A stretch of DNA of 63,955 nt, the filler included, from Reticulomyxa filosa (Eukaryota > Protista > Foraminifera): assembly GCA_000512085.1 (NCBI GenBank). It is 23 parts of 23 records of this genome, joined end to end, with 100 filler letters (N's around TTAATTAATTAA, not from the genome) between each part and the next. Parts side by side here need not be neighbours in the genome. Positions count along the whole stretch, not along the records: positions 45,628 to 47,332 come from ASPP01002363.1; 22 more parts are not named here. One strand, given 5' to 3'. The notes under the pieces were generated by a model. It was not told the DNA's origin, made no database searches, and was given only the letters and a program-made list of their open reading frames with translations. Made by a program: the position numbers and the translations under genes. Of the stretch, positions 1 through 47,332 are shown piece by piece. Position 1 is the first letter of the stretch; every line of letters begins with the position of its first letter.

Positions 1-376
1 CTCTTAATATAATATTGTCATATGCACACATAATCTGAAAATTCTTGCTATAATTTTGTTTTTGTACAAACGCAACTGTACATTAATACTTTTTTCTTCA
101 AAAAAAAAGGCTTTCTAATCGAACATTTGCCAATATTGGCTTTATTCATCTTACAAGACTTATAATCAAGGTTCTGAAAAGAAAAAGATAAGGATTGAAT
201 GTTGTATGACAGATCGAATTCTTTATTATTTGAATCATTAGAGAAAGTGAACATGAACCATTAACAAAAATAAGGACATATAATGAATTTTCTAATTCAA
301 GTGATTTTTTTGTTTCACAAGAAAAAAATTCAAGTACAAAATTTTTAAATTTATTTGGAAGAAAAGCTTATAATTT

Positions 377-45527: not shown

Positions 45528-45628
45528 NNNNNNNNNNNNNNNNNNNNNNNNNNNNNNNNNNNNNNNNNNNNTTAATTAATTAANNNNNNNNNNNNNNNNN
45601 NNNNNNNNNNNNNNNNNNNNNNNNNNNT

Positions 45629-45667
<39 letters not shown>

Positions 45668-45688
45668 CCTTATGTCTTTTCTACAAAC

Positions 45689-46059
45689 CAAATGCAAGGG
45701 GCAAACCAGCCATTCTTTTCATCATCGCTTTTACTAACCCAAAACAGTGTAGGGGTCGTGGAAAACGGATGAATGATCCATATCTTCTTTGGATCTGATT
45801 TCGGGTGCAATACTAAACCATGTCCTTCTTCCAAACGATCCAATGATGAATTGATATCTTCCAATGAATACTTTTTGCTTCCACACAGATTGTGCAAAGT
45901 CTTTACATCTGGAGCGTGGCCTACCGATGTCAAGTGTTTTAGCACCTCATAATGGATCCTTGAATCTAACACATTTTCACGATTATCTCCCGATGTGTCT
46001 ACAGCTTGAAGATGTTGCACTACTTTCTGCAATCTTTTTGTATTTTCTGATTTGCTCAT
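45689..46059 (-). CDS. MerB-like (organomercurial lyase family) protein with PTS2; exon 1, truncated in an intron
   Basis: wHTH IHYEVLKHLTSVGHAP...LDRLEEGHGLVLHP; IWIIHPFSTTPTLFWV; WFAPCIW; RLQKVVQHL at residues 9-17; GTTTGT donor at 45688. Confidence 0.8.
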
Positions 46060-46199
46060 GATTCTAAATTTTTTTTTAGATATCTTCCCCTTTTTCGAGT
46101 TTGGTCCGTCGTGCATTTATCCGAAAATATTTTTTGTCTTGTATAAGTCTTTTCGTTTTAGAAATAGTCAGATTCGAAGAAAAAGGAATATTTCAAAAT

Positions 46200-47071
46200 G
46201 AAGTAGATGACAAACTGTTAAGAATTGCTCTCTCTCTCTCTCGTAATTTTTGTTTTAATTACTGAAAGTACACCAATATACACTTACAAAGAAAAAAAAA
46301 AAAAGGAGCAGTGATTATAGCTCTTGCATTTTCTTTTCAACCATATTAATTTGTTTTTGGTAATATTCATCCAATAGTTGTTTGTCTTGAATATGCTGTT
46401 TTTTCAAACGATCCCTCATTGCGATAAACTCAGATTTGGCCATAGCTGGAGTAATGTCAAGACCAATATGCAAGGCACTAGTTCCTTCAAATATCGATTT
46501 CACATTGAGATCTTCCAAGTGATTGAAGAGAGAGAAAAAAAAAAAAAAAAAGACAAATTGATATATGTTTACATGTTATGCGTACATATATAACCGAGTA
46601 TGTATATATATAAAGTGGAGGTACGCACATAAATGTACATACTAAACTTTCAATCGAATTGTGTTCATTAGTAATCCGTGGAGACGGCGGTAATGGTTTT
46701 TGCGGTGGCAAAGACTTGACTCGTTTTGGCAATGGTCGATTGGGGGGCTGTTTGTTCCTGAGACCATTTCTAAGCCACTTATTTTTTTGATTGAGATGAG
46801 TGTTTTCTTTATCTTGGTCTTCTCCATCGGCCCCCTCCCTTTGCGCATTCGATTGTCTCTTCAACACCGTGGTTGCATATTGGTCCATCCCTTCTTCATC
46901 GTCCTTGCCTCCGTCATCTGCAAACACAACCGTTCCAGCATTGAGGGCTTTGTCGTCATTGTCATTATTGTCACTTTGTGTCCAGTGCTATTGCATAAGT
47001 ATTATTATATTTTCATGGTCCAACATCCAAAACTCCGTTTTTGGTGGATTCATCAAAATTATTATTATTAT

Positions 47072-47107
<36 letters not shown>

Positions 47108-47287
47108 CAAAGCAAACTTGAGATTGAGTCTGTTCGTCGAGCTCTCTTATTTTTTTCCGGCGTTGATCCAACAATGGCAGCGCACAGCTCACCAAGTCTT
47201 GGATGATTTGCAAGTTTTTTGCTTTGCGTATCCACATGTGCTACATTTTCACATAAGCCTAATCCAATTCTTTATTTTGGCATTGTG

Positions 47288-47322
<35 letters not shown>

Positions 47323-47332
47323 CCCCCCCCCC
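46200..47332 (-). CDS. Hypothetical acidic/coiled-coil protein, 3' exons
   Basis: Spliced coding-like ORFs 47013-47237, 46487-46927 and 46315-46518. Confidence 0.5.

Follow-up and report, generated by a model that had tools for sequence, protein, structure and literature searches.

Does the foraminiferan Reticulomyxa filosa carry a nuclear, spliced relative of the bacterial organomercurial lyase MerB, and would the product of such a gene be sent to peroxisomes to act on organomercury? An earlier note, made from the sequence alone, had proposed this for one locus in the window, i.e., the whole 63,955-nucleotide stretch of joined genome parts that was analysed. The locus lies in the piece at positions 45628-47332 (35% G+C, rich in A/T homopolymers), where ORF reading gives exon 1 of a MerB-like gene as 46059..45689 on the minus strand, beginning with an ATG at 46059-46057 and comprising 123 codons and two further nucleotides, the first ones of the Trp124 codon. 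The exon encodes, in order, MSKSENTK-RLQKVVQHL, a helical segment, HGLVLHP, IWIIHPFSTTPTLFWV, and WFAPCIW, and the motifs and coordinates that the earlier note had quoted (nonapeptide at 46035-46009, exon end at 45689) are exact in the sequence. We take this stretch to be the first exon of a protist gene that is nuclear and has introns, R. filosa being its most probable source, and the identity of the gene, its family, and its intron, taken alone, are assigned with high confidence. The features of the locus are collected in Table 1.

Table 1. Features of the MerB-like gene and its flanks, in window positions and in residues counted from the ATG at 46059.
Feature	Positions	Residues	Strand	Basis
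Exon 1, MerB-like gene	45689..46059		-	ORF; 44% identity to EukProt P0158, residues 4-123
PTS2-like nonapeptide RLQKVVQHL	46009..46035	9-17	-	column-wise alignment with six orthologs; rare elsewhere
Variable linker	45967..46008	18-31	-	length and sequence unconserved among orthologs
Winged-helix-like N-terminal domain, DSRIHYEVL to HGLVLHP	45802..45966	32-86	-	aligns with MerB2 N-terminal region
HGLVLHP		80-86	-	exon 1 translation
IWIIHPFSTTPTLFWV		93-108	-	exon 1 translation
WFAPCIW		118-124	-	exon 1 translation
Start of MerB-like catalytic core, including HPFSTTPT	45689..45783	93-124	-	HMMER alignments to MerB2 5c17 and MerB 3f2g
Cys122, equivalent of MerB Cys96	45694-45696	122	-	HMMER alignment; invariant in 64 homologs
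Intron 1, 5' part: donor, in-frame stop, A40	45628..45688		-	sequence; homology ends at donor
Upstream intergenic region and 5' leader, with alternative in-frame ATG 46116-46114	46060..46314		-	sequence

The protein encoded in the window is already recorded in NCBI, UniRef, and EukProt, there on a contig of 1705 bp, and the public 148-aa gene model starts at the alternative ATG, which would put the nonapeptide at residues 28-36 instead of 9-17. In the orthologs, a Met lies 2-8 residues ahead of the nonapeptide, and this Met-to-motif distance favours the ATG at 46059 as the start. Exon 1 encodes no Met past its start at which initiation could bypass the nonapeptide, and the start codon downstream of the signal that the earlier note had named as fatal to its own reading does not exist here.

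Sequence searches of Pfam, NCBIfam, and the PDB with exon 1 alone returned no meaningful match, which for Pfam is explained by the MerB model beginning at about STTPTLFWV, so that only ~20 model residues lie in the exon. A word-indexed search retrieved three homologs carrying PF03243, and full-length homologs match PF03243 at ~1e-26 (92-93 bits). A phmmer search of 1.84 billion proteins rules out a chance resemblance, with 168 relatives at E<=1e-3, of which 31 reach E<=1e-10 and the best, P0005, has E=1.2e-26, and a profile of the family matched MerB2 (5c17) at E=3.8e-6 and the MerB of plasmid R831b at ~1e-3. With the window's protein being incomplete, the fold was tested on the EukProt ortholog P0158, the AlphaFold (AF2) model of which has a pLDDT of 92.8. 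In a fold search with this model, the only matches at E<=0.001 were to MerB2/MerB (TM up to 0.72, E down to 7e-9), and the next ones, non-significant at E ~0.03 or more, were MarR/LexA-type wHTH proteins covering the N-domain. Since homolog, profile, and fold searches agree, the reading of this protein as MerB-like with a wHTH is correct, and the claimed homology to the MerB family is borne out by PF03243 in the full-length homologs and in the last exon on contig ASPP01019428.1 (described below), as well as by the MerB2/MerB fold of the ortholog.

Within Pfam MerB, the window's protein belongs to a large subfamily that is mostly bacterial and ~230 aa in length, in which a winged-helix-like N-domain is followed by a core of the MerB fold and by ~70 aa of Trp-rich extension at the C-terminus. 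Sequence identity with bacterial and archaeal members of ~225-240 aa annotated as 'alkylmercury lyase family protein' (Flavobacterium P0304, Paraburkholderia P0205) is 37-46% over the whole domain, and the motifs HG(V/L)VLHP, HPFS.TPT, APC.WC, AWDNVH.FC, and WYG.H are invariant in the subfamily and shared by the prokaryotic members and the protein studied here.

The closest relatives of the window's protein (P0005, P0007, P0156, P0157, P0158 from EukProt, P0159, and P0097) form one clade with it, and the stem of this nonapeptide clade measures 0.72 substitutions per site with an SH-aLRT support of 93-95 in an unrooted tree. Clade members carry an N-terminal extension of ~20-45 residues, whereas bacterial, archaeal, and animal homologs, ~370 in number, begin ~30 residues later without any such extension, the bacterial and archaeal ones also having no introns. 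A nonapeptide at residues 3-17 is present in all seven clade members with an intact N-terminus (the window's protein and six orthologs), these seven sequences sharing ancestry and so not being independent trials. RLQKVVQHL aligns with RLSKIISHL, RISKIISHL, RVVRLMNHL, RICKLISQL, RVIKIINHF, and RVNKIINQL in the orthologs, and the resulting pattern, R-[LVI]-x-[KR]-[LVI]-[VIM]-x-[HQ]-[LF], is the sole conserved element of the extension, the flanks and the 14-35-residue linker being unconserved. Absence of the motif from orthologs, named at the outset as evidence that would count against a targeting signal, is thus not what the clade displays. Among 368 other homologs, a single one has R[LVIQ]xx[LVIH]xx[HQ][LAF] within its first 40 residues, and shuffling each N-terminus yields this pattern in 0.01-0.4% of cases. 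A looser pattern gave 11 bacterial matches, several of which read (K/R)IDSLIHHA and resemble the first helix of the domain (aligned to DSLVHY), not the extension.

The nonapeptide lies within about the first 40 residues, the location looked for in a PTS2, from either ATG. Positions 1, 2, 5, 8, and 9 fit a strict PTS2 in the window's protein and in all six orthologs, and position 6, reportedly confined in PTS2 signals to L, S, G, or A, a set extended by K, is V, I, or M. Owing to position 6, the strict pattern R/K-[LVIQ]-x-x-[LVIH]-[LSGAK]-x-[HQ]-[LAF] is matched by none of these seven sequences. The peroxisomal 3-ketoacyl-CoA thiolase, a PTS2 cargo, has the same R-L-x5-H-L in its first 20 residues followed by a variable linker, and its nonapeptide is RLQVVLGHL. 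In contrast to that of the thiolase, the putative signal described here carries V, I, or M at position 6.

Of the other readings, the one that survives best is that the extension serves as a presequence, mitochondrial or of another kind, or as a helix for protein interaction, its resemblance to a PTS2 being coincidental. The extension is basic, Ser/Thr-rich, and predicted to be helical, an amphipathic basic helix would fit a mitochondrial presequence, and position 6 departs from the strict PTS2 consensus as just described. However, the R-[LVI]-x5-[HQ]-[LF] spacing is kept in 7/7 sequences with flanks and linker free to vary, the extension in the window has four acidic residues, unusual for a mitochondrial presequence, and RLQKVVQHL is closely like the thiolase signal, so that we consider a non-peroxisomal role of the extension unlikely, if the most serious of the competing readings. 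The function of the nonapeptide as a PTS2 is, judged from the alignment, the somewhat favoured interpretation. Residues 4-16 of P0158 are modelled as a helix at low pLDDT, the value across its N-terminal 20 residues being ~55. PEX7 transcripts are reported for two other foraminifera (bioRxiv 10.1101/2022.07.20.500910), and this preprint was the one source that a literature search for PEX7 in Reticulomyxa turned up.

Two features of the N-termini were seen along the way. The called start of P0156 (L008 653-721) is too far downstream, and an upstream in-frame ATG adds MMTSLASK-RISKIISHL. In five of the seven sequences (P0005, P0156 [L008 653-772], P0157, P0158, and P0007), one to three Cys follow 2-10 residues past the nonapeptide, and in the window's protein and P0159 there is no Cys just after it; these Cys may be a processing site or may be there by chance.

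The second part of the question concerns the chemistry. The working definition of MerB requires Cys96, Asp99, Cys159, and Cys117, with only the 99Ser and 117alt variants recognised (Christakis et al. 2021, PMC8261052). C116, W118, C119, and C182 (P0158 numbering) are among the residues invariant in 64 aligned homologs, and in one ungapped HMMER register against both MerB and MerB2, C116, C119, and C182 fall on Cys96, Asp99/Ser99, and Cys159. The three invariant Cys are placed as C-x-W-C at the Cys96 and Asp99 positions and as HHFC at the Cys159 position. Cys96 has its counterpart in Cys122 of the window, and Cys159 in the HHFCG encoded on ASPP01019428.1, a column that is invariant in the family. 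The Asp99 column is an invariant Cys in 64 of 64 homologs, the position-99 codon of the window's own gene falling just past the splice site in unassembled sequence, and where MerB has Cys117, the family has Leu, Phe, or Ala. Judged by these residues, the subfamily is a '99Cys' tri-cysteine variant and a non-canonical MerB, and this '99Cys' branch of the MerB family has more than 1,600 database matches. Many further Trp and His are invariant in the family, alongside its conserved C-terminal extension. An alternative alignment of WCALG to WCALD of MerB, which places Gly at position 99, was considered and rejected given the single ungapped HMMER register and the downstream L-I-G matches.

No mer genes were found beside the bacterial members (Flavobacterium, Paraburkholderia, 84 soil loci, and 24 immediate neighbours of 16 non-redundant loci, these last judged from the best 25 of 43 families), and the family gave no NCBIfam equivalog match. 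In Flavobacterium, the family gene follows a chloramphenicol acetyltransferase gene in 4/4 places, and acyl-CoA ligase, SDR, AraC regulator, and thioesterase genes recur as neighbours at the soil loci. At the 16 non-redundant loci, the immediate neighbours, as seen in the best 25 of 43 neighbour families, are heterogeneous and form no conserved operon.

Some details of these bacterial loci are worth recording. On the Flavobacterium/metagenome contigs L010-L013, the member lies 17-20 bp downstream of the chloramphenicol acetyltransferase gene (PF00302) in four of four distinct neighbourhoods, and the loci are ringed by many small unannotated ORFs, as in a cassette array or resistance island. 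In Paraburkholderia ginsengiterrae (L014 4581-6723), the MerB-like gene shares 8 bases with the 3' end of a cytochrome P450 gene, an overlap suggestive of translational coupling.

Because the CxxC and the third Cys recall a TRASH ancestry, a metal-binding or other thiol role is at least as likely as Hg-C cleavage. In its strictest form, this idea makes the protein a structural or regulatory metal-binding protein, with a Zn or Cu site or as a metallochaperone, and not an enzyme, the CxxC knuckle being of an ancestral treble-clef/TRASH type. The intact C-x-x-C, the third invariant Cys, and a nearby invariant His are consistent with it, the MerB D99S mutant and MerB2 have been deposited metal-bound, and a TRASH-like, zinc-chelating treble clef has been put forward as the ancestor of the MerB site (PMC4999995). 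Nevertheless, the many invariant Trp and His and the conserved C-terminal extension suggest a substrate pocket, and we give a purely metal-binding role only a tentative place among the alternatives, somewhat below that of a non-peroxisomal extension.

Less probable again is the reading that the earlier note put forward, a true organomercurial lyase from bacteria that would cleave methyl- or phenylmercury inside peroxisomes. The MerB fold, the Pfam membership, and the invariant equivalents of Cys96 and Cys159 speak for it, and the invariant Asp of AWDN, or one of several invariant His, might give the proton. Against it, Asp99, which is required (PMC8261052), is an invariant Cys, Cys117 is absent, the genes seen beside the bacterial members are not mer genes but genes for chloramphenicol acetyltransferase, P450, acyl-CoA ligase, SDR, AraC, and others, a MerA partner is not known here, and there is no NCBIfam equivalog match. 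We regard this reading as improbable; from the residues and neighbours, another role, in thiol-based chemistry or metal binding, appears likelier than canonical methylmercury lyase activity. The name 'organomercurial lyase' and the proposed organomercury detoxification thus find no support in the catalytic residues or in the gene neighbours.

The reading that we prefer, on balance and by a modest degree of belief, is that of a MerB-fold, tri-cysteine protist protein with PTS2 import into peroxisomes. The nonapeptide would act as a PTS2, bind PEX7, and bring the protein into the peroxisomal matrix, where the tri-cysteine site might bind a soft metal or metalloid, an organometal, or another thiol-reactive substrate. 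The analysis demonstrates homology, fold, invariant residues, exon boundary, and motif conservation; both the import and any chemistry are things that we infer. A more specific form of the same reading, in which a protist clade of foraminifera and marine relatives would import this protein by PTS2/PEX7 expressly for metal, metalloid, or organometal chemistry, is a doubtful proposition.

Several known systems bear comparison with this protein. It shares with the MerB of plasmid R831b (PDB 3F0O/3F2F; EC 4.99.1.2; PF03243) the fold (TM up to 0.71), the two-domain layout with a winged-helix-like N-terminus, and the equivalents of Cys96 and Cys159. It differs in having ~15% identity, Cys for Asp99 and no Cys117, a conserved extra C-terminal region of ~70 aa, bacterial relatives without mer-operon context, and a nuclear, spliced gene with an N-terminal targeting-like extension. 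MerB2 of Bacillus megaterium (the 99Ser variant; PDB 5C17), the best profile and fold match, likewise lacks Asp at position 99, but has Ser there instead of the invariant Cys seen here, and its gene lies in a mer locus. The MerB-like selenoprotein SaoL (NF040728) is also a divergent MerB-fold family with proposed organometallic chemistry outside mer operons; unlike the present family, SaoL retains the Asp and carries Sec where MerB has Cys159, and its match was marginal (E=0.024, one bacterial homolog).

The statement in the earlier note that MerB-family proteins are prokaryotic did not hold, given that annotated members of the family exist in Adineta vaga and Dimorphilus and that one atlas cluster is 61% eukaryotic, mainly Ascomycota. 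The Adineta vaga and Dimorphilus copies nest among prokaryotes, apart from the nonapeptide clade. Acquisition of the gene from bacteria, as the earlier note had it, is unsupported by our tree, which is unrooted and in which the sister relationship is weak (SH-aLRT 71); lateral transfer is plausible. The six metagenomic and EukProt relatives are eukaryote-like by composition and EukProt membership only, their contigs are compact and mostly without Pfam matches, and the neighbouring genes gave no decisive taxonomy. A scan of JGI metagenomes for more PTS2-bearing orthologs returned bacterial-type members only. A giant-virus origin of the AT-rich, compact ortholog contigs was considered and set aside, a search of IMG/VR having found no relative.

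As for individual ortholog contigs, P0159 lies on L007 (1-12761; 27% G+C, compact, apparently intron-free) within an array of six paralogous ORFs arranged in tandem (~460-520 aa, no Pfam matches), and the array adjoins a Pro/Thr/Ser-repeat protein. On L003 (~820-920), the P0005 ORF loses homology right after HHFCG, where the sequence is more G+C-rich, and an intron or the end of a chimeric contig could account for this.

Eukaryotic relatives of MerB are in themselves not new because members exist in Adineta vaga, Dimorphilus, and Ascomycota. Our literature searches found nothing linking alkylmercury lyase with PTS2 or describing a MerB-family PTS2 cargo, and nothing on a eukaryotic MerB-like clade or on an organellar MerB relative; the novelty lies in the clade bearing the putative PTS2 and in the recognition of the family as a tri-cysteine variant. 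Should the signal be functional, the peroxisome has recruited a MerB-fold protein of bacterial type. With metal, metalloid, or organometal chemistry there, this would be the first case of a MerB-family protein directed to an organelle, and the function would be new for peroxisomes. In foraminifera, peroxisomes occur in unusual abundance and are not well understood, and the organisms concerned are known for abundant peroxisomes at chemoclines. Independently of targeting, automatic annotation names '99Cys' proteins organomercurial lyases despite the missing catalytic Asp, and this mislabelling bears on surveys that use merB counts as a measure of methylmercury demethylation potential.

There remains the gene itself, of which the window holds the first exon. 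The donor GTTTGT at 45688-45683 splits the Trp124 codon in phase 2; past it, the frame runs into FVEKT-stop, followed by 40 A on the gene strand up to the edge of the piece. None of the 150 phmmer alignments listed passes query residue 128, and most end at 125/126, at the W of CIW, so the homology ends at the GT donor site. GTTTGT is a donor of the host type since the introns of an upstream gene on the same strand of the piece use GTTTGC and GTATGT.

A profile of the C-terminal half of the closest relatives retrieved P0269, 'RFI_22218, partial [Reticulomyxa filosa]', from the 1916-bp contig ASPP01019428.1 (label L009). This contig opens in a middle exon (…KLKQVKIFVKDDKIIRNT) and has the donor AG|GTTTGTA at 58-64, with heptamer and phase 2 as in the window, then an intron of ~120 nt with poly-T and poly-A, and a last exon encoding SGSTQLYGHF, AWDNVHHFCG, and …QKF-stop. 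The last exon matches PF03243 at 33.7 bits (cutoff 27 bits) and is 57% identical to P0158, and exon 1 of the window is 44% identical to the N-half of P0158, the exons of the two contigs having been searched separately and never joined. The two contigs hold complementary parts of the gene without overlap, and each half was found once in the searches. Lacking between them are ~21 codons (C-A-x-G…LIGG…), including the second Cys, and the rest of intron 1 with its acceptor. The 3' part of the gene thus appears, on circumstantial grounds, to sit on ASPP01019428.1, and if that part belongs to the same gene, the encoded protein would be ~250 aa. The intron that the earlier note had placed right after CIW is supported by the ends of the homolog alignments and by the recurrence of the |GTTTGTA donor in phase 2 on the likely 3' contig.

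We infer that the gene is interrupted within intron 1 by a gap in the assembly, and the gene is split in the assembly because the contig probably breaks at homopolymer runs. That the locus is a dead fragment, pseudogene, or contaminant is very improbable: the piece has exon 1 only and its contig ends in homopolymers, but no stop interrupts the 124-codon frame, which keeps every residue that is invariant in the family, a second contig of this assembly has the complementary 3' part in intact form, and the introns together with the neighbouring spliced gene exclude bacterial contamination.

That second spliced gene, also reported by the earlier note, is indeed present upstream on the minus strand. 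It spans 46315-47237 with at least three exons (~47237-47116, ~46986-46643, and ~46519-46315), and its product, without a Pfam match, is of low complexity, basic and acidic. Its introns are homopolymer-rich, and long A/T homopolymers stand at 45628-45667, 47068-47112, and 47289-47332, together with a terminal C10, at both contig ends and inside introns.
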